A stretch of DNA of 64,000 nt, from assembly GCA_051530055.1 (NCBI GenBank), contig JBMGUZ010000004.1, forward strand, positions 1-64,000, written 5' to 3'. Made by a program: the position numbers and the translations under genes. A model generated the notes under the pieces. That model saw nothing but the letters and a program-made list of their open reading frames with translations. It was not told where the DNA came from and did no database searches. Origin of the DNA: Neoechinorhynchus agilis (lineage: Eukaryota; Animalia; Acanthocephala). Positions 11,921 through 59,650 of this stretch are shown in pieces; positions within the stretch are counted from its first letter, which is position 1, and every line of letters starts with the position of its first letter.

Positions 11921-11978
11921 AATGACAACTCAACCAAATTTCACAAGTCCATAGTTATCTTCCCATTCTACCGAGAAC

Positions 11979-12675
11979 TTGGCGCTCCTCATTGTAGATG
12001 GCGCCAATCAACAACCAACGCGTGATCAACGGCTGACAACTGCAATTACTCGTCAGCAAATGTCAGATGATCATCCAGGAAAAACACCAACTGAACCAAG
12101 GCCAAACGATCAATTACGAGAAGAACGATGTGGTTATTTTAATGTCAAGATAATATACTAAATAACGGAAGACGACTCAATGAAGTGCCACCTCTGCTCG
12201 GTAACATTTGTTGGTGGAACTCAGAAGCGGCTTCATCTGCAACATCTTCATGCACAGCATCAGGTCAAGGTTACAGTTTGGATGCGCCCGTTGTGTAATG
12301 AGTACGAACATAAAGAATCGCGCAGTGTCGGAATCCACCTACGCCGATGTAAAGCAAAGTTTCCGGATGAATTCCGAGCAGCTATAAGCCGACCGACAAA
12401 TAATCCAGTGAATACAATGGTAAGCGTCGACGCCAATATTAGCTATAATGGTTCAGATGAAATTCCTGCGAAATGTCCAGTTTGCGACTTCTCTCTCCTA
12501 GGAATCGGTCGGTACAACAGCATTGTGTCTCACGTTGAAAGTGTCCCGAAGCATCGATGATAAACTTCAGATGCTCTCTATGTGGGACATTTTTCGCAAG
12601 CCTTGCCTCTATACGGTCCCACACTAACCATTGTACGGCGCGACCTTCTTTTGACAAAGTCAATTCCTCCAACTA
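11979..12675 (+). pseudogene. Frameshifted R2 N-terminus with four zinc fingers
   Basis: CHLC..HLHAQH; (C>R)PLC..HLRRC; CPVC..SHVESV; after a frameshift CSLC..SHTNHC. Confidence 0.8.
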
Positions 12676-12688
12676 ATCTCAAGCGTTT

Positions 12689-15600
12689 ATGCCTTTGATC
12701 CAAACCAGCCAAGATCGTCAACATGGACACCTCAATACATCGCGCGAGCCGCTACAAGTAAACTCGTCATCTATAATTGGAACTCCATCGTCTCAAGTGA
12801 GCGATGTGATAGATAAAGAGGACTACCCACCCTCTGCCCGTTCACTCGCCTTGGCGGGTGGCATGGACACGGACAGTAGCTGTGAGTTAATGTCAAGCCA
12901 TAAGCAGTCAAATAGTCGGTGTGAAGGGGACACCAATAAGGCTGACTGCCCTACAGTGCCGACTGTGTTCACAGCGGCAGAAGCATATGAATGCGTAACG
13001 GAGGAGCTGAGCGGGAATAACCTCCACCCAAGATACCGAAAGTTTCTTGAGTGTGAGGGCAGTACCCTTCGTTGTTGGAACGGTCCTCTTGATGGGCAAT
13101 TCGTTGATGCGGCAGCTACCAGGTATGCCCAATACCTGCGTTGCGGATGGAGCGCAGAGTTACCCACTGTCTCCAGGGCACGAGCAATCGGTCTAAAGAT
13201 AGTAAAGCTTAGACAGGGCCCTCGCCAAGCCCTTTGCGCCGTTGCTTACCATGTGCTAGGCAACCCTTCACTGTGGAATAGAGTACTTACGAAGCTCACA
13301 GTGGAGGTCCAAAACAACTTGGAGTACTATGCGCAGGTTGCGCGAAGCGTCTTCGACGCTAATCTTCTTGTAGACTACCATCTAAGTAGTCTTCGTCAAG
13401 GCAGCGTAGTATCTCCAATGTTCGTTTTGTTCGCTGCTGCTTACTCTGTTGATTTTACGGCGCATAACCCCTGGGAGAGACAAGAGCGTCGTGTGTTCTG
13501 TCCGGGTCTTGGAACGCGGGTGTTTAACATCTGGATTCATGATTCAGGCACTTATCCTTGCGTTAGGTGTCGGGGTCCGAACCGGTTTCAAGATCGTGAG
13601 CTGAAAAGGAGGCGCAACCGTGCTTTGTATTTCGCAAATACCTCCAAACTAGCTGCGGAGGTGTTCAAGGATGCAGGGCGTAGAGAGTGTACACTGCAAG
13701 CGCAAGACACAGTGGAACACTACCGGAAACTCTTCGAAGGGGATGCTTTGTCTGACAATGCGCCTGAAAGTACTGTTGCACAAGATCAGCAAGTGTCGGA
13801 CGAGCAATGGCCGTCGATCACAACGGCTGAAGTCCAAGAGACCCTTAAAGGCATGAAGACTTCAAGCGCATCGGGACCCGACAAGATAACGATCAGAGAC
13901 GCCCGCGCATTTGATCCGCATCTTCTGGGGATGACGTTGTTATTTAACTACGTCATTCAGTACGGTAGCCCACCACAGGCATGGTTAGAGGCTAAGACAA
14001 TCCTACTGCCCAAAACAAGTACGTCGCCGCAGAAGCTGAAGATTCAGAGCGGATGGAGACCGATTACGATTTCCTCTATTCTGATGCGGGTCTCGCACCG
14101 TATTGTTCTTCGAAGACTTCAAAAAGTATGCTGTCTTGATGATGTCCAAACGGCGTTCGATCCTTCGGCCTGTCTGGCTAATCTCCTCACTCTTAGAAGT
14201 GTGTTGAGAGAAAAGAGGGCGAACAGGCAACCTCTTGCAGTTGCTGTGTTAGACATAAAAAGTGCGTTTGACACTGTCTCACACGCAGCTGTGGAGGAAG
14301 CACTTCGTAACAGCGGGAGTCCAAACTACCTGAGAAGGTACGTTATGAATTCATATCGCGGAAGCTTTACGAAGATCCGGATGGCAAGCGCAAGACCCTC
14401 GAATCCCATCGAGTTCCGCAGAGGAGTAAAGCAAGGGGACCCCTTATCCCCTCTGCTGTTCGCGCTGACAGTAGACGAGGCACTGCGGGAGGTTCGTAAC
14501 TTAGAACTTGGAGCACAGCTTAAGGGAGGTATTCGTTTGTCGCACCTTGTGTACGCAGATGATGTCCTCTTGATGGCTGATGATTGTGCGAATCTTCAAC
14601 AACAGATTGACATTTTGCAACAGAAGCTTAAGGAAAAAAGGCTCTTCTTAAGCCCAGAAAAGTGTCAAACATACACGCACAGCTATAAATATAATATGCT
14701 GACGATAGACCGAGAGTCGTGCATTCATGTCAACGGTACACGGCTTAAGGCCATCGTAGAAGGTGACCCGGTTAAGTACCTAGGTGGCACTCCTTTTAAG
14801 GAAACCACCTTAGATGAAGGCTTAAACGTCCTCGAGTCCCTTTTTGCTGCGACAAGACGCGCTCTTGTTTCACCCACACAAGCTGCGCACTTGCTTAATG
14901 ACTACGCGGTGCCGGTCCTACTGGCAAAGCTCGCTGCCAGTTGGGATATATCGTCTACCAATCTAAGGTGTCTATGCGAGCAGTGGAGATCCAAGCTTAA
15001 GTGTCTCCTCAAGCTTGCGAAGAACATCAGCGACGGCGCATTTTACCTGCCACTTTCCAGTAGTGGTCTAGGCTTCCGAAACCTAGAACACGAGGTACAA
15101 TGTACAAGGCAAAAAGCCCTAGATACAGTGGTAGATAAATTCGGAGGCGCAATAGATCTTCACAAAGAACTCAGTTCAGTTAACGACTACTTCCGCAGGC
15201 TAAGTGGCGGGCTTGGCAGCCGGAGCGAGCTTAGTGAGTCCTCTCCACATCGGCTTTTCCTAAATACACAAATAAAAAAGTGGAGAGAGGCAACGACGCA
15301 AGCGGTTGGTCTTGACTGCTTTACGGAAGGACATGTTGACCGGAGTCTCGCAACGTTCCGTTACAGACAAGGGCATCATCGCTCTTACGTGGAGCATGTT
15401 AAGTTACGGCTCCAATTGTTGGAAGTAGGTACAGTTCTGAACCGAATGGATCATCAGCGCGGTAAATCATGCAGGCATTGCAGTTTCCCGGTTGAGTCCT
15501 GTGCTCATGCCCTCAACGGATGTGAGTATGCCTCTGCAATAATGACCCGGCGTCACGACAAGGTGCAATCGCGCCTTGTTTGGACACTGACGAATAAGCC

Positions 15601-16030
15601 TGGAGCGCGATTTGAGGTTGAGCTGCAGAACCGATTTCATGATGAAAAAGGTAACCTGCATAAGCCTGACCTCATTTTGCGCGACAGAACTTCGGGCAAG
15701 GTGTACATTGCTGATGTTGCAGTGTACTATGAGACAGGACGAGACAGGGCTGAAGCCGTCATGAGTGGCAAAGCAGATAAATACCAACCCTTAGTCCCCG
15801 TAGTTGCGAAACACTATGAAATCCCGACATATAAGGTTTCCACTATCGGATTAGCTGTGGGTTCGCATGGCACCTTCAGCCCTTCTTTGTTACGCCGCCT
15901 GAAGCTCCTCTCCGTGGGTCAACGCACTGCGCTGAATATGGCAAAGACTGCGGCCGAGCAGTCGCTGGCTGTGTTCCATGTTTTCATGGGCAGACGTTGG
16001 GCCTTAAGAGATACAACGGACAACGTCTAA
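12689..16030 (+). CDS. R2 polyprotein body (OTU-like domain, reverse transcriptase, CCHC, restriction-like endonuclease), 1113 aa
   Basis: SGPDKIT, WRPITISS, LDIKSAFD, GVKQGDPLSPLLF, YADD, KYLG, CRHC..HALNGC, RRHD, KPDL..ADVAV; uninterrupted. Confidence 0.95.
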   Translation: MPLIQTSQDRQHGHLNTSREPLQVNSSSIIGTPSSQVSDVIDKEDYPPSARSLALAGGMDTDSSCELMSSHKQSNSRCEGDTNKADCPTVPTVFTAAEAYECVTEELSGNNLHPRYRKFLECEGSTLRCWNGPLDGQFVDAAATRYAQYLRCGWSAELPTVSRARAIGLKIVKLRQGPRQALCAVAYHVLGNPSLWNRVLTKLTVEVQNNLEYYAQVARSVFDANLLVDYHLSSLRQGSVVSPMFVLFAAAYSVDFTAHNPWERQERRVFCPGLGTRVFNIWIHDSGTYPCVRCRGPNRFQDRELKRRRNRALYFANTSKLAAEVFKDAGRRECTLQAQDTVEHYRKLFEGDALSDNAPESTVAQDQQVSDEQWPSITTAEVQETLKGMKTSSASGPDKITIRDARAFDPHLLGMTLLFNYVIQYGSPPQAWLEAKTILLPKTSTSPQKLKIQSGWRPITISSILMRVSHRIVLRRLQKVCCLDDVQTAFDPSACLANLLTLRSVLREKRANRQPLAVAVLDIKSAFDTVSHAAVEEALRNSGSPNYLRRYVMNSYRGSFTKIRMASARPSNPIEFRRGVKQGDPLSPLLFALTVDEALREVRNLELGAQLKGGIRLSHLVYADDVLLMADDCANLQQQIDILQQKLKEKRLFLSPEKCQTYTHSYKYNMLTIDRESCIHVNGTRLKAIVEGDPVKYLGGTPFKETTLDEGLNVLESLFAATRRALVSPTQAAHLLNDYAVPVLLAKLAASWDISSTNLRCLCEQWRSKLKCLLKLAKNISDGAFYLPLSSSGLGFRNLEHEVQCTRQKALDTVVDKFGGAIDLHKELSSVNDYFRRLSGGLGSRSELSESSPHRLFLNTQIKKWREATTQAVGLDCFTEGHVDRSLATFRYRQGHHRSYVEHVKLRLQLLEVGTVLNRMDHQRGKSCRHCSFPVESCAHALNGCEYASAIMTRRHDKVQSRLVWTLTNKPGARFEVELQNRFHDEKGNLHKPDLILRDRTSGKVYIADVAVYYETGRDRAEAVMSGKADKYQPLVPVVAKHYEIPTYKVSTIGLAVGSHGTFSPSLLRRLKLLSVGQRTALNMAKTAAEQSLAVFHVFMGRRWALRDTTDNV

Positions 16031-16131
16031 TTAACAGCCAAAGGACAAAGAGAAAAGGAAACAAACATAAGATTTTCAGTAAAAAATAATTGTCAACAAG
16101 CATGAGAGAGAATTACTAAATAAATGAAGCT

Positions 16132-16132
<1 letters not shown>

Positions 16133-24700: not shown

Positions 24701-24880
24701 AAGTTGGCCGCGAACGGGAAAACCTGAACCGCCGGGACGAATTGGCAGGGAGCATGGACCTCTTGTGAACTCCCTTTGTGTGTTTTAGATTATCAAGGAA
24801 CCTGAAGAAGGCGTGAGGCGCCGAAATATCGGATTCAATAAAAGATTGTGTGTGTCCCTCAACGTCTAAAAAATCAAAAA
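24700..24880 (+). mobile_element. Penelope-like 3' terminus with hammerhead core
   Basis: CTGAAGA(24802)-GGCG/CGCC-GAAA-TATC then AATAAA at 24837. Confidence 0.55.
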
Positions 24881-24884
24881 CCAT

Positions 24885-30207: not shown

Positions 30208-30324
30208 CGTTGACATGGTGGATGAACCAAACAGCATACCAGTTTTTCAACAAAACTGTTTTTGTACAACACACACTATTTTATGCCCATTTACGCTAGC
30301 CCAATCAATAGCGTACTTACCACA
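30208..30324 (-). repeat. 3' LTR (117 bp)
   Basis: TGTGGTAAG...TCAACG; 4 differences from the 5' LTR counted by eye. Confidence 0.92.
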
Positions 30325-30443
30325 TTTCCTCCCCCGCAAATTCCTAACCTATTTTGCGGTATTCGTCGTACGGCCGTATAGGAGGCCTCCGGCCCTGATT
30401 TCGTGACTTCACCTCCATCTTCTGCATTGAACTCTACCTTCCT

Positions 30444-31217
30444 TTAAAGTTCTTCCTCTTCAACCTTTATGCTTACATTATCCTTTTCTTGTTCACATTC
30501 TTCGTAGTCTTCTTCCCTTTTCCTCACGAAATCCCCGTGCGCCCTATTTTGCGTTCCGTTTTTATCCACGATTCGATAGGACACCGGTCTTGATCGTTGA
30601 TCCACGACTTCCTTTTGCGATTTCCCAGCTCTTCCTTTTTTCCACCACACTTCATTGCCTTCCCCAAACTCGCGATAACGCCCCTCCGGTCTCTGCCTCT
30701 GTCTTCGCGCTGTCCTGTCTCGCACTGTTTCCTCTGTATTTGGTCTGATATTGTCGAACACTGTATTCATCCTCCTCCCTAACATCATTTCTGCTGGAGT
30801 TTTTCCTGTGATTGCATGAGGCGTGTTTCGGTATGTTTGTAGAAATTCCGTAAGTGCCCTTCGAGTATCCATTCCTTCCCCTACCATTCCGCGTCGTTTA
30901 GGGGTTCCTATGAATCGTTCTACCAACCCATTCGTTTGTGGGTGGTAAGGACTCGCCTTTATGATCTCGATCCCATTTTCTTCGCAAAACGCCTTGAACT
31001 GTTGCGACATAAATTGAGGCCCGTTATCGCTCACAATTTTCTTTGGAGTCCCGAATCGAGCAAATGTTTCCCTCATCCGATCGATCACCACTTCGGATGT
31101 TATTTTGCATGTATTGTAGAACCAAACCTCGGGCCACTTACTCCTTGCATCTACGATCTCCAAATACATCTTGGAGTTTGTCGGTCCTGCCAAATCGTTG
31201 TGCACGCGCTCCCACAC
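30444..31217 (-). CDS. pol: Gypsy integrase catalytic core
   Basis: RVHNDLAGP, VSDNGPQF, NGLVERF. Confidence 0.9.
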   Translation of the reverse strand: MWERVHNDLAGPTNSKMYLEIVDARSKWPEVWFYNTCKITSEVVIDRMRETFARFGTPKKIVSDNGPQFMSQQFKAFCEENGIEIIKASPYHPQTNGLVERFIGTPKRRGMVGEGMDTRRALTEFLQTYRNTPHAITGKTPAEMMLGRRMNTVFDNIRPNTEETVRDRTARRQRQRPEGRYREFGEGNEVWWKKGRAGKSQKEVVDQRSRPVSYRIVDKNGTQNRAHGDFVRKREEDYEECEQEKDNVSIKVEEEEL

Positions 31218-31468
31218 TTCCGCCGGACAGTCCCAAGGTATAAGCGGCAGTTGTTGAATATTTGGTCGGGCTATTTGGCACCTTTCGCAACCTTCTACCT
31301 TCCGCCGTATGTCATCTTCTATACCGGGCCACCATGCGTAATATCAGATAGAGCTTTTGTGCCTTCAATTCCTGGATGACCACGATGTAACATATCTAAC
31401 ACTTCCTTTCTCAGAGAAAATGGGATGACAATTCTTTGTAAGTGCATGACAATGCCGTTTTCGCAGGA

Positions 31469-33532
31469 TTACTCATCTGCTCGGGCCGCGAACTGCCTGT
31501 CCGTATCGAGCATCGTTTTCGGCAATCCGAGCTGCAAATATCGTCCAATCCTTACCAGTTGACGATCTTTAATCGATTCCGCTTTCAATCTTGACTTCGT
31601 TAAACCGCAAGCCACCACCTTCTCCTCTTGCACCATTCGTAGCGTTATTGTCTCCTCCTCTGAGTATTTCTGCTTTGGAGGGTCTACCGGAAATCTCGAC
31701 AAAAAATCAGCACATTTATTCTCGACCCCTTGAACATATTCGATCTCAAAGTCGTATTGATTCAAGAACAGGCCCCAGCGTACCAGTCGATTATTCGTCA
31801 TCTTGGACAAATCTCTCCGCATTCCAAAAATATGCTTCAGGGGTTTGTGATCGGTCTCTAAGATGAATCGATGTCCATATAAGAATTGGTGGTACCTCTT
31901 AATCGAGCTGACGATTGCTAAAGCTTCCTTTTCTATAGTCGCGTATTTCTTTTCCGCTGAGGTAAGTGTCCGGGATACAAACATGATCGGTTCTTTGCTC
32001 CCATCTTCCTTCTTATGGAACAATCCCGCACCAATTCCTTCTTCGCTTGCGTCGCATGTCAGCACAGTCATTCTTTTGATATCGAAAGGTACTAGGACCT
32101 TGTGATTTTGGACCGCTCGCTTTACTCCATCGAAGATGTCCTTCTCATACTTTCCCCATTTCCACGGAACTCCTTGTTTCAGTAACGCATACAATCCCCT
32201 GCAGTGAGATTGCAATTCGGGAATGAAGCGTTCTAGATAGTTGACCATACCGATGAACGACTTAAGTTCTTTTTTATTTCGTGGGTATCGCGCCGACGTT
32301 ATCGCAGTCACCTTTTCTCCTTGCGGTTTTATTTTCCCGTCTTCTAAGCTGTGCCCCAAATATCTCACCTGTGCTTCCATAAATCTACATTTATCTCTTT
32401 TGATGCCTATCCCTGCCTCCTCAAGTCGCTCGAGCACTGTCTTTAAATTTTGGAGATGTTCTGCGTCATTCTTTCCGGAGATGATTATATCGTCGAGATA
32501 AGCTCCGGTACTTGGGATATCTATCAACAAATTGTCTATAAATTTCTGGAATATCTGCGGAGCGCAACTTAGTCCGAACGGCATCCTCCGGTACCGGAAC
32601 AATCCCCATGGAGTCGATATATTTAGGAGTTTCCTATGGTCGTCTGCCACCTCTAACTGCAAGTAAGCATCCGATAAATCAATAGTAGAGTACTTCTTGC
32701 CATTCCCCAATCTCTGTAGCATGTCGTCGAAAGTTGGCATATGATAGCTGTCCTGCCTTAAAGCTTTATTGATGGTGATTCTGAAATCCGCACAGATTCG
32801 TATTTGTCCATTACTTTTCTTCGTGATGACCATAGGGGTTCCCCATTCTAAATTTGTGTCGCCTGTCTCCACTCGTTCCAATACCCCCTTGTTCGTCAAT
32901 CGTTCCATTTCTTTAACTACCGCATCCTGTAATGCCCACGGCACTCTCCTCGCTGGTATCCACGTGGGCTGAGCACCGTCTGCAATCGGCAGTGTTACTC
33001 TGAAATTCCTGATGGGGGTACACTTCTCCTCGAAAAGTACTTTAAACTGTTTTAGCATCTCATCCACTCTCTCCTGTACGGGTTTTATTCCCCTGACGAT
33101 CACTGAAGGGGGTAACTCCATATCAAACAGCTTTATCCAGTCAATCCCCCATAAACATCCCTTCGTTCCTTTTACCACGTGCACCACTGTATTCTTCTTT
33201 ATCCCTCTTGTTTCGATTATCACTTTGCACTTGCCCAGACAGTCGATTTCGGATCCTCCAAACGCCTTCAATCGCTTCGTCGCTTTCAAACTCGGCTTTC
33301 CGATCTTATTCCACATATCCTCGTCGATGATACTAACTTCCGCGCCAGTATCAAAATTCATTGTCACTTGACATCCATCGACCCTCGCCGTTATTTCTGC
33401 TCGATTACCCTCGTAATTTGCAGTGCAGATTAGCCCATAACAACCATAACCTTTCTTAAGTTCCCACTCATCCTCTCTAGGCTGCACTCCTTTTACAGCT
33501 TCTACTTGTCTCACCCCCGCTTTTCTACACAT
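31469..33532 (-). CDS. pol: Gypsy Pol: protease, RT, RNase H
   Basis: FDTGAE, YLDDII, TCDASEEGIG, ETDHKPL. Confidence 0.92.
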   Translation of the reverse strand: MCRKAGVRQVEAVKGVQPREDEWELKKGYGCYGLICTANYEGNRAEITARVDGCQVTMNFDTGAEVSIIDEDMWNKIGKPSLKATKRLKAFGGSEIDCLGKCKVIIETRGIKKNTVVHVVKGTKGCLWGIDWIKLFDMELPPSVIVRGIKPVQERVDEMLKQFKVLFEEKCTPIRNFRVTLPIADGAQPTWIPARRVPWALQDAVVKEMERLTNKGVLERVETGDTNLEWGTPMVITKKSNGQIRICADFRITINKALRQDSYHMPTFDDMLQRLGNGKKYSTIDLSDAYLQLEVADDHRKLLNISTPWGLFRYRRMPFGLSCAPQIFQKFIDNLLIDIPSTGAYLDDIIISGKNDAEHLQNLKTVLERLEEAGIGIKRDKCRFMEAQVRYLGHSLEDGKIKPQGEKVTAITSARYPRNKKELKSFIGMVNYLERFIPELQSHCRGLYALLKQGVPWKWGKYEKDIFDGVKRAVQNHKVLVPFDIKRMTVLTCDASEEGIGAGLFHKKEDGSKEPIMFVSRTLTSAEKKYATIEKEALAIVSSIKRYHQFLYGHRFILETDHKPLKHIFGMRRDLSKMTNNRLVRWGLFLNQYDFEIEYVQGVENKCADFLSRFPVDPPKQKYSEEETITLRMVQEEKVVACGLTKSRLKAESIKDRQLVRIGRYLQLGLPKTMLDTDRQFAARADE

Positions 33533-33646
33533 TCGGGCAAAATGTCCGCTAATACCACACTTGTAACATTTTCCTCTACTTGCCGGACATTGAACTTTAT
33601 CTCGATGAACGAATCCGCACTTTCCACATCGATTACCAAACTTCTC

Positions 33647-34321
33647 TTACAGTTCTTGTACTCGCTTATCCTCTGGTTTCCTTGTGAACCTTTGACTTCT
33701 TATTATTCGATCAACCTCGACCTCTCCTCTTTGATCCGAACGCTCGTTACTTTTTGAATCACATAACATCTCACTCGCCTTTTCTGCTACCTCGATCGCT
33801 TCGGCAATCTTTAAGACTTCCTCCAATGATGCTGAATCCTTGCCTTGCATCGCAGCTTTTCTTAAAGCTTTCAAAGGTGTCACCACGATTATATGATCTT
33901 TAATCCTTTCGTCGATCGCTGATCGTTCATCCTTAACTTCCTTGTTGTAGAAACCGCATCCTCGTGCAGCTCCTCGTAGTGCTGTAGCCCACTCGGCGTG
34001 AGTTTGTCCTTCTGCTTTACGGCATGTACCAAAGAGGTAGCGCGCCGTTATCTGGTGCATTGGCTGTGCTACGTGAGCGTCAATCAGCGACTTGACATCT
34101 ACATAGCTGACTTCGTCGAACGGTCGGCCGGCTACCATCTTCTTTAGCTCTGTGTAAATCTTTGGACCCATCCAGGCCAATAGACAGGATCTACGCTTTT
34201 CTTCGTCGCTTTCTTTGATTCCATTGATTTCCATGTGGGCTTCGACTTGTTCTACGTACTCGGCCCAGTTCTCGACTCCATCGAAAGTGTGGAATGGGGT
34301 TATCTGTGCTCCCCGTATCAC
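33647..34321 (-). CDS. gag: Gypsy Gag (frameshifted before the zinc knuckle)
   Basis: ENWAEYVEQ..LLAWMGPKIY..ARYLF; knuckle CYKCGISGHFARMC lies in the next frame. Confidence 0.85.
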   Translation of the reverse strand: MIRGAQITPFHTFDGVENWAEYVEQVEAHMEINGIKESDEEKRRSCLLAWMGPKIYTELKKMVAGRPFDEVSYVDVKSLIDAHVAQPMHQITARYLFGTCRKAEGQTHAEWATALRGAARGCGFYNKEVKDERSAIDERIKDHIIVVTPLKALRKAAMQGKDSASLEEVLKIAEAIEVAEKASEMLCDSKSNERSDQRGEVEVDRIIRSQRFTRKPEDKRVQEL

Positions 34322-34434
34322 ATTTTCTGTTCAATCTGGGCCTTGGGCACCCTTTTGACCATCTCTTCCATCCACACCTTTTGCTGTCCCATGATACCCT
34401 CCATCCACGTCTTCCATTTGTCCTCGTCGCCAGA

Positions 34435-34551
34435 TGTTGACATGGTGGATGAACCAAACAGCGGACCAGTTTTTCAACAAAACTGTTTTTGTACAACACA
34501 CACTATTTTATGCCCATTTACGCTAGCGCAATCAATAGCGTACTTACCACA
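34435..34551 (-). repeat. 5' LTR (117 bp)
   Basis: TGTGGTAAG...TCAACA followed by the PBS at 34421-34432. Confidence 0.93.
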
Positions 34552-36958
34552 ATATCAAGCCTTCGAACTTCTTGCAATTCCTCGTCTAGACAACGCGAAT
34601 AGCAAGGGGGAGAGGGGATCCACTTGCTTTACTCCTCTTCGGAAATTAATAGGGTCTGGCGTTGGGCATACGGATCTTCGTACTGCTTCCGCAGTAAGAG
34701 CTCATCACTTATCTTTGCAGATAGTGAGGACACCCTATTTTACGAAGCGATTCCTCTATGGCAGCCTGTGAAACAGTGTCAAAGGCACTCTTTATGTCGA
34801 GCACACCCACCGCAAAAGGTTTCCTGTTTGCCCGCTTTTCTTTAACAACACTACGAAGAGTTAGTGGATTAGCCATACATGCCGACGGGTCAAACGCCGT
34901 TTGTCCAGCGTCCAGACAGCATACTCTTCGAAGCCGCTTTAGAATGATGCGATGCAAGACACGCATTAAAATGGAGGAGGTCGTAATCGGTCTCCAACCG
35001 GCCTGAGTTTGCAGCTTCTTCGGTGACGCACTTGATTTGGGCAACAGGATAGTTTTGGACTCATTCCACGATTGTGGCGGGCCTCCGTGTTGCATGACGA
35101 AGTTAAAGAGCAACGTCATACCCAGAAGTAACGGATCGAAGGCTCGGACATGTCGAACCGTTATCTTATCCGGACCCGATGCGCTTGAAGACTTAATGCT
35201 TTTGAGGGCATCTTCGACTTCCACCGATGTGAGGACTGGCCAACGTTCCTCTGGAGACTGCTGTTGATCTGCAACAGTACTCTTTAGCAGATTCGCAGGT
35301 TGGACGTTCCCTTCAAATAGACGACGATAATGGTCAATTGTTTCTTGCGGATTCAGTTCATATTCCCTTCTCTCTGCATTTTTAAACACCTCAGCTGCAA
35401 GCTTCGGGGTGTTGTCAAAATCCAGGGCGCGATTTCGTCTCCTCTTGAGCCCACCGTCTTGGTATCTCGTAATACCGCGACATCTAACACATGGATAAAT
35501 GCCGTATACGTCGATCCACACATTGTAAGCGTGTGTTCCAATCCCGGCACAAAAGATTCGACGCACTTGTCTTTCTAAAGGCGAATTTACCGACAAATCA
35601 CTTGAGTATACTGGAGTGGCAGCGAACAAGGGGATACTACGCTATTCTTTAAAAGACCTCCAAGTTGGACTTCCAGAGACACGTTAGCGTCAGAGACGTT
35701 CTGTGCAACTTGGGCATATTATTCCTTGTTGTTTTGAACCTCCATTGTGACTTTCGTTACTACCTTCTTCCACAATGAAGGATTACCCAGTACGTGGTAA
35801 GCCTGAGTCAGACCTTTCCTGAGCTTAATGATCTTAAGGCCTAATGCTCGCGCTACAGAGACTTGAGGCGCCTCGTTACTCCGATCACATCGCAAGTACT
35901 GAGCATATCGCATAGTCGCCGCATTGACAAATTCACCATTAATGGAACCTTCCGATTGACGGAGGATATCTCGCTCCGTCTCAAGAAAACCTCTGTACCT
36001 TGGATGGAGGTTATTCTTGTTCAGCACGTCAACAACACTTTCATACGCCTCGACCACTGTAAAGACAGTCGACTCGATTGAACAATCTGCCATTGTGGTG
36101 CCCCCTTCACACTGGCGTCTTGACTGTGGCGTATGATTTTCATGCAAGAACTGGCGTTGCGTTTCCATGCCACTTACAAGGGTAGGTGAGCGGACAGAAG
36201 GGCTTTCTTCGTTTAATACCTCTGGAGGTTCGCGTTCCTCCTCGCTGACCAGCTCGTTGACCGATTGCTCTGTAGGCGGATCCATTCTGTCGTTTCTTTC
36301 ACTTTCCTGATTATTGGCCACGAATGAAGCCGCATCCCGTCTACATTTGCAGACATTCATGTGGCTCCGGACAGACACATAATTGTCCGACCTGTATGCC
36401 GAACACGCCGGGCATTGATACAACACTGATGTTGATCCGTGTTCGTGCATAAGGTGGTCCTTCAAGACTTTGGTCCGGTTACTCCCGTGGAATGTGGCGT
36501 AGCATTCTGAGCATTCCACGGGTCCCTCTGGCTCTTTGTTAGCGATGATAAGGCCACCTTTCCCTGCTAAATGGGCCACTTTTACGACTGTCTCTTCATC
36601 AAATAGGGCTGCTGCCTTTGGCGGGTTCTTTTTGGAGCACGTCTTAAAGTGTAGGCCAATTGAACAGATGGACTCCTTCGTCAGTCCACATATACCACAC
36701 ATCCATTCCACAGCCTGCTTGTGGAATGATGTCATGTGCTCGCTAATCAATCTCACTTTCGTCTTTCCGGTAAATATCACTTTCGGCTTGCAATCTGGGC
36801 ATTCAATACATTCCTGGTGGACCCGATGGTACTGCAGGTATACTTTTGCATGCCGTTGTTCATTGGTTAGCGCCATCTAGAATGAGGAGCGCCAAGTCCT
36901 CGGTGGAAGGGGGTGTATCCGATGACTCGTCGTCAATTATTTGGTTTCTTTCAGAAGA

Positions 36959-52289: not shown

Positions 52290-55137
52290 GCGTTTGTTCG
52301 GCGTCTGGAAGGCAATAACAGTAGAAGAGGTTCGTCAGTCATTAAGGGGAATGAAAGGATCCAGTTCGGCGGGTCCCGATGGAATAAGTTTGCGTAAACT
52401 TGCGTCCTTTGACAAAAATTTAACTCTTACCACTCTTCTCTTCAACCTAGCGCTACAAAATGGAGGTCCTCCTACCCAATGGAGAGAGAGCAAAACTCTC
52501 CTAATACCTAAGACCGGAAAATCCGCCAAGCAACTAAGGATGCTAGAAAATTGAAGGCCCATAACTATTGCATATGGCTTACTAAAGCTTCTCCATCGAA
52601 TAATATTACAGAGACTAACTGCTAGTTGCACCCTGGATGCGGGGCAGACTGCAGGTAGCGAGTCGGCCTGTCTGGTCAACAATATCGACAATGCCGGGCA
52701 AAGCGGGTTGGAGTAGCGATCGCAGTATTAGATGTGTCTAGCGCATTCGATAAGGTAAATCATAGCGCGGTAATGCGCGAGTTGGTCCGTCAGGATGTCC
52801 CCGAGCACCTCAAGAGATACATTAGGAATTCATTTAGAGAAGCGTTCACACGACTGCAGTTCCCTAACGCAAAACAGTCCGAAAGGATTTTCTTTAAGAG
52901 AGGAGTTAAACAAGGAGACCCTTTGTCTCCGTTTTATTTGCAGATGATATTTTAATGTTTAGTAGGTCACCCGCGAGGCTGCATTGCGGAATGTGGGGTT
53001 GGTTTTTAATCCTACCAAATGCTTTTCCTATAGTCACCATTTTAATTGCGGTTCGTTAATTGTCGACGCAAATCCAGTGGTAAGCATTTTGGGAGTCCAA
53101 TTACGCACGGTAGTTGATGGAGACAATATCAATTATTTAGGCGGAAAGCCTTGGACGGCATTCAATCAACAGGAGGTGAGAGATATAGAAAGGGCTTTTA
53201 GCTTGACCAAAGAGGCCGGTTTGTCCCCCACGCAGGCTAATGGCCACCAAGCATTTATAAATGGGTATGTGGATTCTAATCAGCTCTCAATTAGGTATAG
53301 ACAGGATCGGCACAGGCACTTTACGGAGCTGGTCAAGATGCGAGCTGAACTTCTATAGGTTGGTGCCGTTATGGCAAGGATGCCGAGTGAGAGGCGGAAA
53401 ACTTGCCGCCATGCACGTATTGAATGGGTGCGAGTTCTCAACGGACGCAATGGTGAAGCGGCACGACGAAGTGCAGCGATGCTTCATAACATCAATAAAC
53501 TGATCCAACGAGGAAAGAGACACAAGTGCTTCAGGCAAATGTGTTGGTTTCACCGTCGAAAACAATAACCACATATTCGACGACGGTGGAAACCTTCACA
53601 AGCCAGATCTGCTTGTAAAAGATCATAGTAGCGGCCGAATTTACATTATTGATATAGCCGTCTACTATGAGACCTCTTTGGAACGAGCGGCGATTATCGG
53701 GAAGAAGAAGGAAAAAAGTACGAAATAATAAGATCAGCGGTTGCAAAAAAATATAACTGCACAATTAGCAGCGTAAAAACGGTAGGTTTACCCGTTGGAT
53801 CCAGAGGTACTTATTCCCCTTTCCTTTTAAATCGATTATCAATTTTCAAATTAACAAGAGATGCCGCAATCAAGATGGCTAATGCAGCGGCAAGAGAAAA
53901 GATACCAAACAAGCGGGCTTGAGTCCTACACAAGCAGCGCATATGATTAATGACTATGGACTCCCGCGCCTTGTATTTCGGCTACAAGCTGCTCACGGCA
54001 TTTTGTCAACTTCCCTAGACAAGTGTGAACAGCACTGGAGTACAAAACAGAAGTTGTTATTTCTCCCCCACTTTTTAAATGATGGGGTAATGTTATTGCC
54101 ATTAAACAAAGGAGGACTTGGGTTCTCGTCAATTAAGCATTCCGTGATGAGTTCAAGAATGAAGAGTTACACTGCAGCAAATTCACACTATCGTGATTTG
54201 GACGAAGACCAGCGTGTTTACAAAAATCTCGAGGAATATGTTATCAGCATCGCTGGATAACCGTCCGACTTCTCAGTCGAGAACATGAGGAATATTTATA
54301 CAATATACCTCGAGAAAAAGTGGAAGACGCAACTACTTAATCGCTGGGAGTAAGCGCAATCACGGGGGACATTTCAATCATTCGGCGCGAACTTTCCGAT
54401 ACCGTCAAGAAAACTACTACAATTATACAATGTGAGTAAAAATGCGGTATCAACTGCTGGAGGTTGCATCAAATCTCTCCAGGATGGGCCAAGCCCGAAG
54501 CACTGAAGACACTGGATGGCACCAGCACAGACGCAACTTCATGTACTAAATCTCTGCCCGAAAAACACAACTAAAATGGTAAAGCACCACGATGAGGTCC
54601 AAGGACGCTTTACATGGGATCTACAGAAGCGATGGGGCTCTCGGTGGGAGATTGATACCGAGAACCGTATTATCGGTTTGAAGTTCCAATTGAGAATTGT
54701 ACCCACAATCCAGGAGGGCAGGTGTAAAAACCGGATGCAATATTAGTCGATTAAAACGGCAAGCGATCATAGTTGACTTTGCCGTCTATTACGAAAATAC
54801 AAATGAGCGCACAGAGGAAATTATGACTGCGATGAGGTAGCCATATAGCTGGATTTTCCTAATGAAAGCGTTTCGACAATGGGGCTCGCTATTGGCTCAT
54901 TGATCAAGCGGCTAAAAAAAATTCAATTTGTCAATTAAAACCGAAGTTCGGCAGAGAGGAGCTTAAAGACGTTCCACCTATTAATGACACGAAGCAGAAG
55001 AATCAATAATCTTTAAATAACAATGCATGGAACACAATTCAAATAAATGAAGAATCGGCTATGAAGAAATATGGAAAAAATTGATCAAAAGTATTAAACC
55101 CGTGTGAAAGAAAATATCTCCAAAATAAATGCATGCC
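52290..55137 (+). mobile_element. Mosaic of at least three deleted R2 copies ending at a 28S junction
   Basis: SAGPDGIS, SSAFDKVNH, GVKQGDPLSP, KRHDEV, PTQAAHMINDYG, HVLNLC; TAGCC at 55138. Confidence 0.88.
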
Positions 55138-55168
<31 letters not shown>

Positions 55169-55225
55169 ATTTTGAATCGAAAAAACTTACAAACACGCGG
55201 GTAAATGGTGGACGTAACTATGACT
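55138..55225 (+). rRNA. 28S rRNA: Permuted 28S micro-linker: 31 nt downstream target, 25-nt spacer, 32 nt upstream target
   Basis: TAGCC..AGTGAC(55168) ... CACGCGGGTAAATGGTGGACGTAACTATGACT(55225). Confidence 0.85.
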
Positions 55226-55486
55226 TTCCTAATTTCCGACAAAGATTCCCTAGGACCCAAAGAAACTATCGAAACTAAAGAAAGCTCATCAGTTTACCCC
55301 CATCCGCCGGGTACGAAGCGCTTCCGCGCTTAAGATGGCGATCTTCCAAACAATCAACCAACTGTTTCAACTGCATCAACTGCTGATTCGACTTATTTTT
55401 TCACCCAAGAGACAAAAAAGTCGAGAGTTAACTCCACATCGACCGGAAGCGAAGCGCATTTTTCAGATGGCGCTTTTCCCGATGAT

Positions 55487-56842
55487 ATGGAAGCCGAAAA
55501 GCGTTTGAGTGCGACAATAGCAACAACATCATCACATATTTCAACTTCTGATCGCCCAAACAAATCCAATGAACTCACAGACGAACTCGCAACGGTTCAG
55601 CGTACCGAATCTCACAACACCAATGTTAATGCCGTTCCGAAAGTAGATATGGCAGTATTCGAAAAGGTGTTTTCTCAAATCAAGCAAAAGTTCAAATTGA
55701 CTAGAAGATTAGCCAGACCACTTCACTTCAACGATATCTATAAAGTGGAATCTATAAGGTCAAATTTGCCGTGGTCCCATAGTCCAGGACTACCATTCAC
55801 ACAACGAGGATGTAAAACTAAGGAAGAGGCCTACCTAAAGTATGGGGCTCAATTGAGATCCAAATTACATACTTTTAAAAAGTGGGCTCACTCAAGAATC
55901 AATCTATCGCCAACAGCTGTTACGATTAGAAACCATCTGATCCCAGCTCTTGCCACTGATAAGACACGTGGTGTCTATGCCTATGCATACGATATGTGGC
56001 ACATCGAGACAATTCTATACTATGACCTCATCCAGCAGTATAAGAAGAAATTCAAACTTCCGAAGGGCGACTGTTTCTATGGTATAGATATCCCACCTCC
56101 TGCAGGAGGAATGAATCAGTTACTTGACAGCCTTAAAAACTTCCATTTTGATAAACGATGGATGTGCGATTTCTCGGAATTTGATAAGTCTCTGGCGAAT
56201 TTCTGGATTGACGCAGCTTTCAGAATTATAAATTCTAACATTGATCCTAGTCATTACTTGACACACGGAACGCCGAATGTACAATCCATCACAAAGATGA
56301 TGAGACTGGTGAAGGATTACTTCATCAACACTCCGCTAGTCCTATCTAACGGACGAATCTATCACAAAGCGAATGGCGTGCCTTCCGGATCGTTACTCAC
56401 TAATTTAGTTGACACGATCGCCAATGCTTTAATTATTAATTACGTGATAGTTAAGAACTTTCCAGAATATGAAGCCCCATTATATGGTCAATCATTTATG
56501 GGTGATGACAGTGTAGTTAGTTTCTATCATGCTGACCCGGTAACTAATCGCAAAGTTACTGTTGAAGAACTAGCTGACATGTTCTGGGAATGTGGACTCA
56601 TCCTCAATACATCAAAATTCGTAATATCGGACGTCGAAATTGAATACTTGGGTTACAAGTTGAAGGCACATTTCCGACGATGCAAAGCAATCAAACTTGA
56701 AAAATTCAGAAACTTCGTTTTGAGTTCTTCGAATCCTCATGCCAATGTCAATCCGGCACCATCCGCAATCATTCTATATAAAGCAGGAGAAGACGATCCG
56801 GCTGCTTGTCCGGCATGCGAACTTTCACTCGTTGGAAAATGA
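55487..56842 (+). CDS. Chimeric ORF: R2 N-terminus + partitivirus-like RdRp + R2 zinc finger, 451 aa
   Basis: SPGLPF, KTRGVYAY, motif A CDFSEFD, motif B GVPSGSLLTNLVDTIAN, motif C GDD, EYLGY, then LKAHFRRC..CPAC homologous to R2 copy 1. Confidence 0.9.
   Translation: MEAEKRLSATIATTSSHISTSDRPNKSNELTDELATVQRTESHNTNVNAVPKVDMAVFEKVFSQIKQKFKLTRRLARPLHFNDIYKVESIRSNLPWSHSPGLPFTQRGCKTKEEAYLKYGAQLRSKLHTFKKWAHSRINLSPTAVTIRNHLIPALATDKTRGVYAYAYDMWHIETILYYDLIQQYKKKFKLPKGDCFYGIDIPPPAGGMNQLLDSLKNFHFDKRWMCDFSEFDKSLANFWIDAAFRIINSNIDPSHYLTHGTPNVQSITKMMRLVKDYFINTPLVLSNGRIYHKANGVPSGSLLTNLVDTIANALIINYVIVKNFPEYEAPLYGQSFMGDDSVVSFYHADPVTNRKVTVEELADMFWECGLILNTSKFVISDVEIEYLGYKLKAHFRRCKAIKLEKFRNFVLSSSNPHANVNPAPSAIILYKAGEDDPAACPACELSLVGK
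55640..56659 (+). other. Endogenous viral element: dsRNA partiti-like RdRp, thumb truncated
   Basis: Motif order and wording typical of Partitiviridae/Durnavirales RdRps; ~340 codons without a stop. Confidence 0.85.
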
Positions 56843-58296
56843 CGTTATAACTCTCTTGTTAGCCATTTGGAGAACGTCCACAAATCAAATTCGATCACCT
56901 TTCAATGCCCAGCGTGCGATGTTCAATATGATACACTTCCATCTATTCGTTCTCATGTTACACACTGCCAGTCCGTTTCCAAAGACAAGGACTTAAAATC
57001 TTCATGCAAACCAGAGCAGTCAGAAAACTGCATCAATTCAAACCGCTATAGCTCAGGAGCGTTTAACATAATTTCTCTGAAACGATTGTCAGGGCTACCG
57101 GATGAAGGAAATAACCTATTACAACACTCACCTAAGAAGACACGCCGAACGGACGACGATTCGAATGATTGTGTTCTGCGGGAAGTGACTGTTACTATAG
57201 AAAGCAGTGGCGATTCGTGTACTATATTCCCTTATCTTTCTCATAATCCTGTTTACATTGACGCTCAATGCAATAACGGTCAATCAAACTTTCAAATCAC
57301 AAAGAACTGCCTCGAACTCCATTACTACCTAAACAATGATACCTACCTCAACTCAATCATCTAGCTCAAGAATTTGTAAATCGAGCGATCGTGTAAACCT
57401 GCATCAGGTGCCTACACCCCATATTGGGTCATGTGCGTTTACAGCACAGGAGGGACATGAATTTATTCTCAATTATCTTCAACGACCGAATATTCATCCA
57501 GACTACCGTCTTTTTCTAAGCAATGAATGTGCCGTTCTAGGCAATCAAGCCGGTCTAATTAATCAGGAATTTATAGATTCAATGAGTGAGCGATATCAAC
57601 TGTACTTAAAATGCGGGCGACAAGGGTCTCGCGAATGCCCAGCAATGTCCCGCGCGCGCAGTCTTGGCCTCAAAATTGTTAAGTTGAAGAAAAATTCAAC
57701 AATGGCACTGGCGATCGCCGCCTCCAAAAGCGATTCACATGGGCTCCATACAAGAGGTGGGGTTCTCGGTTTGAAGTTCCAATTGAGAATTGTACCCACG
57801 ATCCAGGAGGGCAGGTGTAAAAACCGGATGCAATATTAGTCGATTAAAACGACAAGAAGCGATCATAGTTGACTTTGTCGTCTACTACGAAAATACAAAT
57901 GAACGCACAGAGGAAATTATGACTGCGAAAGAGGATAAATATAACGCAAATAAAGATGAGGTAGCCATACAGCTGGATTTTCCTAATGAAAGCGTTTCGA
58001 CAATGGGACTCGCTGTTGGCTCAAGAGGTAGTTATTCAAATGGATTGATCAAGCGGCTAAAAAAATCCAATTTGTCAATTAAAACCGCTTTGAATTTGGA
58101 TACAATTCGGCAGAGAAAAACTTAAAGACGTTCCACCTTTTCATGACACGAAGCAGAAGAATCAATGATCTTTAAATAACAATGCATGGAACACAATTCA
58201 AATAAATGAAGAATCAGCTATGAAGAAATATGGAAAAAATTGATCAAAAGCATTAAACCCGTGTGAAAGAACATATCGCCAAAATAAATGCATGCC

Positions 58297-58327
58297 TAGC
58301 CAAATGCCTCGTCATGCAATTAGTGAC
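58297..58327 (+). rRNA. 28S rRNA: 31-nt 28S remnant (R2 downstream target)
   Basis: TAGCCAAATGCCTCGTCATGCAATTAGTGAC. Confidence 0.85.
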
Positions 58328-59650
58328 GTTTTGAATAATACGCCACAGTCAAAACGCAGGTGTGAAGGGCATCTGCGTATGAGATCGTGGTGGATGAGCT
58401 AATCAACAATAATCTCCATCCAAGATACAAGGTTTCTTGAGATTTAGAGAGATATTCTCCGCCGATCGGAAGCCTCCATTAATAGTGGAAAATACGTTTC
58501 CAATTATTTTCAAAAAATTACTCACGTTCATTGAGGGTCCAAGATGCCATTACGGGCTCGCATTGCAAAGGTTAAAACAAACCATCAGCGCCAAAACCGC
58601 TCAATTCATCAGCGAACAAAACAGAACGATGCGCGGAATGTACAAGCAGCGATAGGAAACAGACGGCGATTTGCAATGTACAAAAAACGGAAGAAATATA
58701 GTCCGTTAAATTATTTGGCGCACGTTTAAACTTTTATAATCATTTTTAATCGAAAAATAAAAAACAACATTTCTTTGAACTTTTCTCTCACTTGGGAGGC
58801 CGTTCGTTTCAGCAATGTTGGTTTTCGTCTTTGTTCTTCTTTCCGAGCGTCCTGAGAAAAATAAATTGTAAAAAGAAACCATGTAGTCTGCTTTCTCGAA
58901 GTGTTTTCAAATTAAGAACGGTTTTATTCGTCTCTTAAAGTGTTTTTTAATGTTCATTATTGAATTGACGGACAGTTTTAAGTTTCTTCAAATGAAAATT
59001 TACAATCGATTTTTAAAGCTGGTAGCATAAAAAATTCAATCAGATGGATTAGTTGGTTCTGTAATTAGAAACGGTAAAAACCACTGCGCTTTAAAAAAGA
59101 ATGCAGCATCAAAAAATTTGCAACCTAACTTATCTGCGGAGAATGACAAACGGCCACCTTATCTTTTAAAAGTTCACTTAATCTCATAGAAAAGATCCTA
59201 GTAAGGGCTAGGCATAGCATAAAAGCAATGACGCGAGTGAGTGTTTGTAAAGTTTATCAGTCAAACTCTCTCGGAACAGGAAGGGAAGCTAACGACAGTG
59301 GTTGTTGATTAAAACGTTCAATGTTTAAATGCATTGAACATTCAGTAGCGCTGGGTATAAACTTGACGATCGCGTAATTGAACGATAGAAAAGTATCCGC
59401 TAAAAAATTATGAGTAGATTTGTTGGTGATGTAGCGTAAAATGAGCGGCATCATTGAACGTTGTCCCGTCTTGCTTGGTGGATCCATGGCATGAAAAACT
59501 TGCAATAAAATTACAAAAGTTTACATAACAAAAGATTAGTTAACGAACTAACCGGCACACTTCTTAGGATCATTAAGAGTATTGGTTCCCATCCAATTGC
59601 CTGCACACCGTAACGCGGAGAAGACAAAAAAATTAAATAACGGAAACAAT
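58328..59650 (+). repeat. R2-headed repeat X plus extension Y
   Basis: Near-identical to the reverse complement of 29290-29668 and to 21240-22400. Confidence 0.85.

Follow-up and report, generated by a model that had tools for sequence, protein, structure and literature searches.

The element at positions 55226-58296 of the 64,000-nucleotide stretch of Neoechinorhynchus agilis DNA analysed here (the window) is best read, with a probability of about 0.9, as a single, non-autonomous and degraded copy of the R2 retrotransposon, lying in a decayed acanthocephalan rDNA/transposon graveyard, in which ~1.0-1.2 kb of sense-strand RNA from the RdRp segment of a partiti-like virus replaces zinc finger 1 and half of finger 2. 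That this chimera arose once, by template switching during the reverse transcription of a defective R2 transcript, we would put at about even odds. Its parts and flanks are the following:

55196..55225, + strand: 28S rRNA gene fragment, 5' flank of the R2 site, matching at 97% identity the 28S flanks of two further R2 copies of the window
55226-55236, + strand: degenerate TTCCTAA, possibly also 28S
55226..55486, + strand: R2 5' end, 5' UTR-like region, aligned with three other R2 5' ends
55487..55642, + strand: S/T-rich, in-frame, stop-free stretch of 52 codons from an ATG (open-frame translation)
55643..56667, + strand: endogenous viral element, RdRp fragment of a partiti-like virus (Pfam, tblastn, HMMER, alignment, NJ tree)
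56668..58125, + strand: R2 ORF remnant with half of finger 2, fingers 3-4, a Myb-like region and a C-terminal endonuclease part (tblastn with R2A and with pieces of the element itself, zinc-finger motifs)
58126..58296, + strand: R2 3' UTR, 96% identical to the 3' UTR of the neighbour ending at 55137
58297..58336, + strand: 28S rRNA gene fragment, 3' flank, ~33-40 bp with two mismatches to the canonical sequence (pattern search and alignment)

The viral part (55643-56667) consists of 341 stop-free codons without any frameshift, and its translation is that of a picorna/partiti-type RdRp with polymerase motifs A, B and C. The first-pass annotation, made from the letters alone, had read an RdRp in this R2 copy and had proposed a profile search and a tree as checks, and both bear it out. 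The ORF from 55487 matched Pfam RdRP_1 over residues 51-379 with 104 bits (E=8.5e-30; cut-off 23.9 bits). In a single tblastn HSP, residues 102-427 of the 537-residue RdRp of Freshwater macrophyte associated partiti-like virus 1 (P0002) aligned with 55643-56665 at 40% identity, and a HMMER scan of 1.84 billion representatives returned 550 relatives, all of which align from about query residue 95 on. The closest named match is a 'partiti-like virus', which forms a clade with the fragment at 100% NJ bootstrap, and the nearest relatives lie on contigs of 1.4-2.0 kb. Taking as partiti-like an RdRp that groups with those of partitiviruses and stands alone on a segment of ~1.5-2 kb, the fragment fits the Partitiviridae / partiti-like viruses (Durnavirales). 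Matches in the PDB were weak and solely to picornavirus 3D polymerases.

As an RNA virus gene with R2 and 28S on both sides in one contiguous stretch, the fragment would count as a non-retroviral endogenous viral element (EVE). Its predicted product cannot be a complete polymerase, because the C-terminal (thumb) part, ~110 residues present in all full-length relatives, is missing and replaced by R2 sequence; a functional RdRp comprises fingers, palm and thumb. No stop interrupts the frame for 445 codons, from the upstream stretch across the RdRp and on into the R2 fingers. Such a run would have a probability below 0.05 once neutral divergence reaches 5%; the acquisition appears recent, and the openness of the frame is compatible with mere youth.

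The passage from virus to R2 at 56667/56668 is sharp, shares 2 nt of microhomology and leads in frame into the second half of zinc finger 2. To describe the R2 part, two other copies of the window are needed:

11921..16132, + strand: reference R2 copy R2A (copy 1 of the first-pass annotation), a 1113-codon ORF with RT and endonuclease (Pfam RVT_1, E=9e-33)
53904..55137, + strand: sister R2 copy, 5'-truncated, ORF from about residue 722 to the 3' end (shared lesions, identity)

R2A, whose best PDB matches are R2 retrotransposon proteins (E=1.4e-72) and which has its 28S junctions, served as the reference defining the losses of the chimera. The same frame, read from 56669, matches the zinc-finger region of R2A from the first residue on, at 43% identity (E=1.9e-15), and fingers 3 and 4 follow. 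By comparison with both R2A and the copy at 36957, the chimera has neither finger 1 nor the first half of finger 2. Two to three premature stops and at least two frameshifts break up the remaining ORF, and a single large internal deletion has taken out the entire RT, ~770 codons by the measure of R2A; in tblastn, N-terminal and C-terminal pieces of the R2A protein aligned alone, with no RT. On all of these points, namely the in-frame return to finger 2 and its successors, the exchange of finger 1 and half of finger 2 for viral sequence, and the stop, frameshift and RT deletion downstream, the first-pass annotation had been right. The chimera is R2-derived and not an autonomous R2, which encodes fingers, Myb, RT and endonuclease in a single ORF. 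A protein search with its zinc-finger piece for closer R2 relatives gave no match.

Located 88 bp upstream, the sister copy has 95-96% identity to the chimera across the ungapped columns of the final 575 bp. The two copies have a stop and a frameshift of the endonuclease part in common and, because these lesions are shared, the R2 backbone must have been dead before the copies split. At its 5' end, the sister abuts the end of a different R2 ORF without intervening 28S. We ruled out that the chimera is an older EVE with an independent R2 fragment on either side, since its R2 parts follow one another collinearly within a single matching pair of 28S junctions.

Pattern searches and alignments confirmed both of these outer junctions, which had been placed at 55225 and 58297. 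On the 3' side, the boundary at 58296/58297 is the canonical R2 site, with TAGCCAAATGCCTCGTCAT beginning at 58297; the window holds five 28S 3' junction sites of this type against 0.02 expected by chance. On the 5' side, the 28S flank GCGGGTAAATGGTGGACGTAACTATGACT stops at 55225, or reaches 55236 with the degenerate TTCCTAA taken as 28S, and its pattern has four matches against 0.14-0.22 expected by chance. The insertion site reads ...TTAAGG / TAGCCAAATGCC..., exact at the 3' junction, in an arrangement also seen in four other R2 copies of the window; the 5' junction of the chimera is unlike those of the other copies. The flanking 28S amounts to shreds of ~30-40 bp on either side, with no gene, and because the flanks are so short the chimera is not within a transcribed rDNA unit. 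Co-transcription with rRNA, which the first-pass annotation had envisaged, is inapplicable to a copy surrounded by a graveyard of R2, LTR and Penelope-like fragments and short 28S shreds. Rfam found neither a ribozyme nor any other RNA family in the element, whether the whole window, the 48-64 kb part or the 5' 500 nt were scanned.

A motif of the R2 5' UTR, conserved across the R2 copies of the window, occurs twice in the chimera, at 55291-55347 and 55426-55479, in the same frame. The local alignment score of this internal duplicate is 26, compared to 17.5 +/- 2.4 in shuffles, and 3 of 500 shuffles reached it, so that its significance is moderate. Although the motif is common to other R2 copies, no HDV-like ribozyme family was matched by Rfam at the R2 5' end. 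The S/T-rich stretch that follows is indeed an open frame, as had been noted, but its proposed R2 origin (55487-55640) was not confirmed, as it matches neither R2 nor virus. In tblastn and blastp, 55334-55642 had no match among R2 copies, loci and virus; the six closest viruses, taken as a profile, did not pick up the upstream stretch (445 of 500 shuffles score as high), and the likeness of that stretch to the R2A N-terminus did not exceed that of shuffles (205/1000) and was discarded. This stretch is either a poorly conserved viral RdRp N-terminus or sequence of the R2 lineage. Since relatives of the RdRp carry 14-104 residues ahead of the conserved core, a viral start codon within 55487..55642 would be compatible with its position.

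A second copy of the viral RdRp fragment was found at another locus (L001), on another N. agilis chromosome, with no R2 or 28S around it and with different end points. Of 870 sites compared, 53 differ between the two copies, 41 of them third codon positions, which gives a dN/dS of 0.07 (p=6e-18 against neutrality). Each copy reaches past the other at one end, and the L001 copy is without the first 50 codons of the window copy. From these third-position-biased differences and different truncation points, the two copies must represent separate captures from diverged viruses, and the low dN/dS would more readily reflect evolution within the virus prior to capture. Polarised against relatives, the 11 amino-acid differences showed no clear direction (2 versus 5, with four ties). 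An independent second capture of the same virus lineage in one genome offers an internal comparison.

The L001 copy is stop-free and annotated as a gene (the annotators' model, on RNA-seq evidence), and its setting is unrelated transposon debris. We discarded its attachment to the upstream Penelope-like fragment, since 1.1 kb of unrelated sequence lies between them, as well as the candidacy of the adjacent orphan ORFs as a viral capsid gene, these matching only hypothetical N. agilis paralogues. A locus paralogous to the L001 surroundings (L003) has no RdRp. The window as such matches one N. agilis chromosome at 94-97% nucleotide identity, while exact look-ups of two of its ORFs gave no record. 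No further R2-RdRp copies were found in the window, at three N. agilis loci or in protein databases.

The R2 enzyme is a textbook template-jumper. Its RT jumps serially between templates in vitro (PMC8594491), and in vivo jumps are documented by U12 snRNA and tRNA at R2 5' ends and by R2/R1 hybrids, with the foreign RNA at the extreme 5' end and not in the interior (PMC3414825); the interior position of the viral piece here speaks against such a jump. Given this R2 precedent, the double template switch suggested by the first-pass annotation is plausible, and we infer the enzyme responsible, the order of events and their timing. An R2 protein supplied in trans would start target-primed reverse transcription at a 28S-type target, on the 3' UTR of the defective R2 transcript. 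Copying toward the 5' end, the RT would quit the R2 RNA within finger 2 and go on along the viral plus-strand RNA. It would then return to R2 RNA, to one or two fragments from the 5' end, and the 5' termini of these would give the normal 28S/R2 5' junction; this second switch we likewise infer, the 5' boundary of the viral part being undefined.

A continuous cDNA made from successive RNA templates is suggested by the viral part having the same sense as R2 and lying collinear between its 5' end and 3' part, with canonical 28S outside. Two 5' fragments copied one after the other would be expected to leave the 5'-UTR motif doubled, the mosaic neighbour copy argues that such joins recur in the region, and the distinct 5' junction of the chimera fits independent events of target-primed reverse transcription. 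Furthermore, the stop and frameshift common to the 5'-truncated sister fit the copying of defective R2 RNAs in trans, for which there is precedent (PMC4370867). The in-frame junctions are best seen as luck, at 1 in 3 to 1 in 9.

The main alternative, rather less likely, is that the viral piece was added later, by end joining of viral cDNA into a double-strand break in the zinc-finger region of an old, dead R2, with ~150-250 bp of R2 lost. The cDNA could come from any cellular RT or conceivably from the partitivirus polymerase itself, partitivirus RdRps having been reported with RT activity (PMC8557412). Disabling lesions are dense in the R2 part (at least 4 in 1.46 kb) and absent from the viral part (0 in 1.3 kb), so the R2 copy could predate the viral insert; however, the lesions common to the sister predate the copy, and the contrast does not require an older backbone. 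The 2-nt microhomology suits end joining as well as template switching, and with roughly 40% of the window R2-derived, a random strike would often land in R2. The L001 copy, for its part, shows that the virus lineage also enters DNA by routes without R2 context. Such an insertion nevertheless needs three coincidences, namely the sense orientation (1/2), the in-frame return (1/3) and the landing in an element whose enzyme makes such chimeras, and it leaves the duplicated 5'-UTR motif unexplained. Sequence alone cannot separate it from template switching.

We consider it improbable that the copied template was the transcript of an older EVE elsewhere in the genome. At least one other EVE of the lineage exists and is modelled as a gene on RNA-seq evidence, and EVE transcripts are nuclear, closer to the R2 machinery than the capsid-enclosed RNA of a dsRNA virus. 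L001, the only known EVE, cannot be the donor, since it is without the first 50 codons and 6% of sites differ under a strong purifying-selection pattern, so that a third, unseen EVE would be required. This dN/dS pattern, together with each copy being longer at one end, argues for a direct viral origin.

Of the two possibilities named by the first-pass annotation, a one-off capture and an R2 lineage carrying an RdRp module, we favour the former; no other R2-RdRp fusion appeared in protein searches, and the latter now seems very improbable. It would have an R2 (or SIDE-like) lineage keep and propagate the RdRp fragment, or the host keep it for antiviral small RNA or a fusion protein. The long open frame with both junctions in frame, the kept R2 5' end and 3' UTR, which are all that a non-autonomous R2 needs (PMC3414825), and the stop-free, gene-annotated independent copy at L001 would agree with such a role. 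Against this, no search found a second copy with the junctions of the chimera, the RdRp is without its C-terminal part, the low dN/dS is measured between two separately truncated copies in unrelated contexts, the chimera lies outside an rDNA unit, and youth can explain its openness. There is equally little chance that the chimera is expressed and kept for virus-matching small RNA or a polymerase-derived protein, or mobilised in trans as a SIDE-like R2 family; if it were, R2 would be a vehicle filing samples of RNA viruses at rDNA-type sites. Its present role is likely none; at most, transcription of the region, if it occurs, would make it a source of RNA matching the virus.

Least credible is an artefact in which the R2-virus join is absent from any worm chromosome: our evidence is the assembled sequence, and the published hybrid assembly of Illumina and low-coverage long reads from pooled worms (PMC12690905) may contain a structural error in this repeat-rich region, but DNA libraries do not contain RNA viruses, k-mer collapse cannot produce two independent junctions, both collinear and in frame, with just 2 nt shared, and the second genomic copy puts the virus sequence in the DNA of N. 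agilis.

R2 SIDEs, R2/R1 hybrid SIDEs and R2 copies bearing U12 snRNA or tRNA at the 5' end (Eickbush and Eickbush 2012, PMC3414825) resemble the chimera in their kept R2 ends and deleted interior, in foreign RNA that the R2 RT presumably acquired by a template jump, and in insertion at the canonical 28S site. The foreign RNA of the chimera differs from theirs in being viral, ~1 kb long, interior and in frame with the R2 ORF. The degenerate but replicating R2 of Bacillus rossius (PMC4370867) is alike in its lesions common to copies, which imply that dead templates were copied; no viral cargo is described there. An R2 SIDE is recognised as a family of copies that have the 5' ribozyme of R2 together with its 3' end and whose 5' junctions vary as a sign of propagation. 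The chimera has the internal deletion and kept ends, but no copy family or propagation was found in the window, at the three N. agilis loci or in protein databases, and it would probably not qualify as a SIDE family.

The germline entry of RNA viruses without a DNA stage is mostly deduced from debris at old insertions. In LINE-mediated EVEs (bornavirus-like N via L1) and in insect retrotransposon-virus chimeric DNA, a cellular RT copies viral RNA and forms retroelement chimeras. L1-type events copy polyadenylated viral mRNA alone and are marked by a poly(A) tail with target-site duplications, and the insect chimeras involve mostly LTR elements. Here, in contrast, the carrier is a site-specific non-LTR element, and the viral piece is internal, with no poly(A) and no target-site duplication. 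Viral capture mediated by LINEs and other retroelements has been stated in general terms (PMC12922265). The chimera keeps its carrier, both outer target junctions and one inner junction to the base and, if read data confirm it, would be a concrete case of a site-specific non-LTR element taking up viral RNA internally. It looks like a rare fossil of an RNA virus written into animal DNA, a single accident and not a working new element.

Partitivirus-like RdRp and CP EVEs are known from plants, fungi and arthropods (PMC3136472, PMC12027680, PMC13517406); as here, they are truncated RdRp ORFs amid transposon debris and their nearest relatives are metatranscriptome viruses. The chimera is unusual among them in keeping the carrier element and both junctions. 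None of the papers that we found names Acanthocephala as a host phylum for this group of viruses. In another acanthocephalan, Pomphorhynchus laevis, we found an older, decayed capture of the same partiti-like lineage which, together with the two recent N. agilis captures, points to an undiscovered lineage of acanthocephalan-associated partiti-like viruses.

The longest open reading frame of the region, which starts at 55487 within the chimera (the R2 copy at 55226-58296 that encloses a partiti-like RdRp fragment at 55643-56667), matched Pfam RdRP_1 over residues 51-379 (E=8.5e-30; 104 bits against a cut-off of 23.9). Used as query in a word-indexed search, this frame found four relatives among 5.8 billion proteins:

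Hypothetical protein of Neoechinorhynchus agilis, 96% identity
RdRp of Freshwater macrophyte associated partiti-like virus 1, 40% identity
Unnamed metagenome protein
Hypothetical protein of Pomphorhynchus laevis

Both the Pfam match and the identity to the named virus bear out the RdRp call of the first-pass annotation. By tblastn, window positions 55643-56665 corresponded to residues 102-427 of the 537 of the viral protein in a single HSP, without stop or frameshift, and the contigs of the closest relatives were 1.4-2.0 kb long, the size of a partiti-like RdRp segment. In a neighbour-joining tree, the window RdRp paired with the N. agilis protein (100% support) and was joined weakly by the P. 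laevis protein (62%), while the clade holding it together with the named virus received 100%. Motifs A-C were kept in an alignment with seven relatives, in which the fragment stopped about 110 residues short of their C-termini. The sole matches among solved structures, picornavirus 3D polymerases, were weak.

We could also confirm both 28S junctions proposed for the element. Sequence lying just 5' of the R2 site in 28S occurs four times in the window, once ending at 55225, and TAGCCAAATGCCTCGTCAT, which lies just 3' of the site, occurs five times against 0.02 expected, once at 58297. Alignments of the window's R2 copies showed identical 3' and variable 5' junctions, the usual R2 picture, as well as a common 5'-UTR motif. 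The reference copy, R2A (11921-16132), carries a 1113-codon ORF with RVT_1, and among solved structures R2 retrotransposon proteins come closest to it (E=1.4e-72). From 56669 the RdRp frame aligns, from the first residue, to the second half of R2A zinc finger 2 (43%, E=1.9e-15), the in-frame return that had been described, and two more fingers follow. Farther 3', R2 is represented by no more than its Myb-like region and its C-terminal endonuclease part, and comparison with R2 downstream of the fingers found no RT. The stop, frameshift and RT deletion reported earlier for this part were likewise recovered, since the R2-homologous path contains 2-3 premature stops, at least two frameshifts and one large deletion, whereas the 445 codons of the upstream stretch and RdRp contain no stop, frameshift or deletion.

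Separately, the R2 lineages of the window appear to have four finger-like motifs before the Myb region, alternating between C2H2 and CCHC (11921-12700). The first three fingers of R2A lie in another frame than its long RT-endonuclease ORF, and R2A, the best copy, may thus itself fall short of being intact.

The 3' breakpoint of the viral part is readable to the base because L001, an N. agilis locus on CM121343.1, stays viral where the window turns R2: identity with the L001 copy ends at 56667 and identity with R2 starts at 56669, with two bases (CA) fitting both. On the 5' side, resemblance to the R2 5' UTR extends from 55226 to ~55385, and the conserved 5'-UTR motif is doubled (55291-55347 and 55426-55479, in one frame with a spacing of 132-136 nt), which was not seen in the window's other three R2 5' ends. 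The second motif copy reached a local score of 26 against 17.5 +/- 2.4 in shuffles (3 of 500 reached it). Confident viral homology begins at ~55640, and of the 550 relatives that HMMER recovered in an exhaustive scan over 1.84 billion representative sequences, none aligned before about query residue 95 (window ~55616). The 52 codons from the ATG at 55487 to ~55640 matched neither R2 nor virus, and we therefore do not retain the earlier view of this S/T-rich stretch as the R2 N-terminus. Since the RdRp core of relatives is preceded by 14-104 residues of poor conservation, this stretch may be the true viral N-terminus.

Considering these results, we favour, with a probability of roughly one half, a model in which the chimera is a single cDNA made from successive RNA templates and integrated by R2 protein in trans. 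The templates would have been, in order, a defective R2 RNA, a viral plus-strand RNA and R2 5' fragments, and integration would have followed at a 28S-type target. Such template switching fits the sense orientation of the viral part, the collinear R2 parts and the abrupt junction with minimal overlap, as well as the loss of R2 sequence between the switch points, the doubled 5'-UTR motif and the private 5' junction. Prior studies have shown that the R2 RT jumps between RNA templates, as seen in fly R2 5' ends with U12 snRNA or tRNA, R2/R1 hybrids and short internally deleted R2 elements (SIDEs),(PMC3414825) and that it performs serial end-to-end jumps in vitro.(PMC8594491)

The main alternative, repair of a break in an older, dead R2 copy with viral cDNA, seems to us possible and distinctly less probable. 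The contrast in lesion density between R2 and viral parts would suit it, as would the L001 copy, an endogenisation of the same virus outside any R2 context; moreover, the RT activity reported for partitivirus polymerases could have made the cDNA.(PMC8557412) That the template was a transcript of an unseen third endogenous viral element (EVE) is improbable, and that the RdRp part is a maintained or propagating module rather more so. Misassembly is the least probable; the published N. agilis genome was assembled from pooled worms by a low-coverage hybrid approach.

Over its last 575 bp, 3' UTR included, the chimera is 95-96% identical (ungapped columns) to a sister copy (53904-55137) whose end lies 88 bp upstream. 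In the endonuclease part, both carry the same stop and the same frameshift, so this R2 lineage was already defective when they separated, as has been described for stick-insect R2.(PMC4370867) If the viral part is neutral, a frame still open over 1335 nt would be improbable at 5% divergence (P<0.05), and the capture is thus young, of an age comparable to the 4-5% divergence between the two copies. The sister copy is 5'-truncated, and at ~53895-53905 its ORF, entered at ~residue 722, abuts the end of a different R2 ORF, with neither 3' UTR nor 28S between the two ORFs. Therefore, the chimera is not the sole mosaic R2 join, and template switching or rearrangement would be expected to produce joins like this second one.

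Rfam identified only four short 28S pieces in the 64 kb and none near the chimera, whose 28S flanks measure ~30-40 bp on each side; the window as a whole mixes fragments of R2 with Ty3-type LTR elements and further repeats. The chimera is outside any functional rDNA unit, and the suggested co-transcription with rDNA consequently does not apply to it.

The 88 bp between the tandem R2 copies (55138-55225) consist of ~33-40 bp of 3'-side 28S, ~25 bp of uncertain origin and ~30-40 bp of 5'-side 28S, an arrangement suggestive of the deletion of an entire rDNA unit that separated two sites occupied by R2, possibly through TGAAT microhomology. The same repeat follows the 28S fragments 3' of the chimera and of the copy ending at 29702; its occurrences lie at 58336-58860, 29662-29199 (minus strand), 19237-19686 and 21386-21646, and at 11049-11371 of L003, another N. 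agilis locus. It starts ~33-40 bp into 28S, its opening stretch resembles R2 protein residues 89-117, and it may represent a second family of rDNA-associated elements that has a separate insertion point. A minus-strand R2 copy (29702-36957) is split by a Ty3-type LTR retrotransposon (30444-33532) with protease, RT, RNase H and integrase ORFs, and a second Ty3-type element (16623-19252) directly follows R2A.

Partitivirus-derived EVEs are common,(PMC3136472, PMC12027680, PMC13517406) and R2 chimeras have already been described with cellular RNAs,(PMC3414825) whereas the RNA here is viral; our literature search found no report of viral RNA within an R2 element. The carrier and junctions of this EVE point to a site-specific non-LTR element as its likely vehicle. 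In a survey of RdRp-like database proteins, acanthocephalans figured only as mononegavirus-like P. laevis sequences.(PMC12548735)

L001 contains a further EVE:

10344-11267, N. agilis GCA_051530055.1, CM121343.1: stop-free partiti-like RdRp, annotated gene ACOME3_009028

It covers viral residues 152-445 uninterrupted; relative to the window copy, it begins farther downstream and also reaches farther 3'. L001 matches the window only over 55795-56667 (94%) and in a 181-bp Penelope-like repeat (97%). Neither R2 nor 28S was found near this EVE, which is flanked by a GIY-YIG (Penelope-like) ORF fragment upstream and an apparent piggyBac-type remnant downstream. The two copies differ at 53 of 870 shared in-frame bases (6, 6 and 41 by codon position; dN=0.019, dS=0.256, dN/dS=0.07, p=6e-18 against neutrality). 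Copies separating after one integration would diverge neutrally; these two therefore come from two captures, of viral genomes that had diverged under selection. The P. laevis EVE (WNNJ02002109.1, 9950-11085) is more distant (~36% identity), frameshifted and read in three frames, and it groups weakly with the N. agilis copies, a hint that this virus lineage has long been associated with acanthocephalans.

At the 5' limit of the L001 EVE, TTCACACAAC occurs twice, 130 bp apart. An adjoining run of orphan ORFs (L001 6087-8321) gave no Pfam match and matched only N. agilis paralogues, one of them on another chromosome (L003 9989-10429, 78%); these ORFs were not found near the window EVE. A 658-bp Penelope-like stretch containing the GIY-YIG ORF end is present twice in L001, 11 kb apart and 100% identical (8548-9205 and 19704-20361), and its 181-bp part lies at window 24706-24884, which together suggests that this Penelope-like family was recently active.
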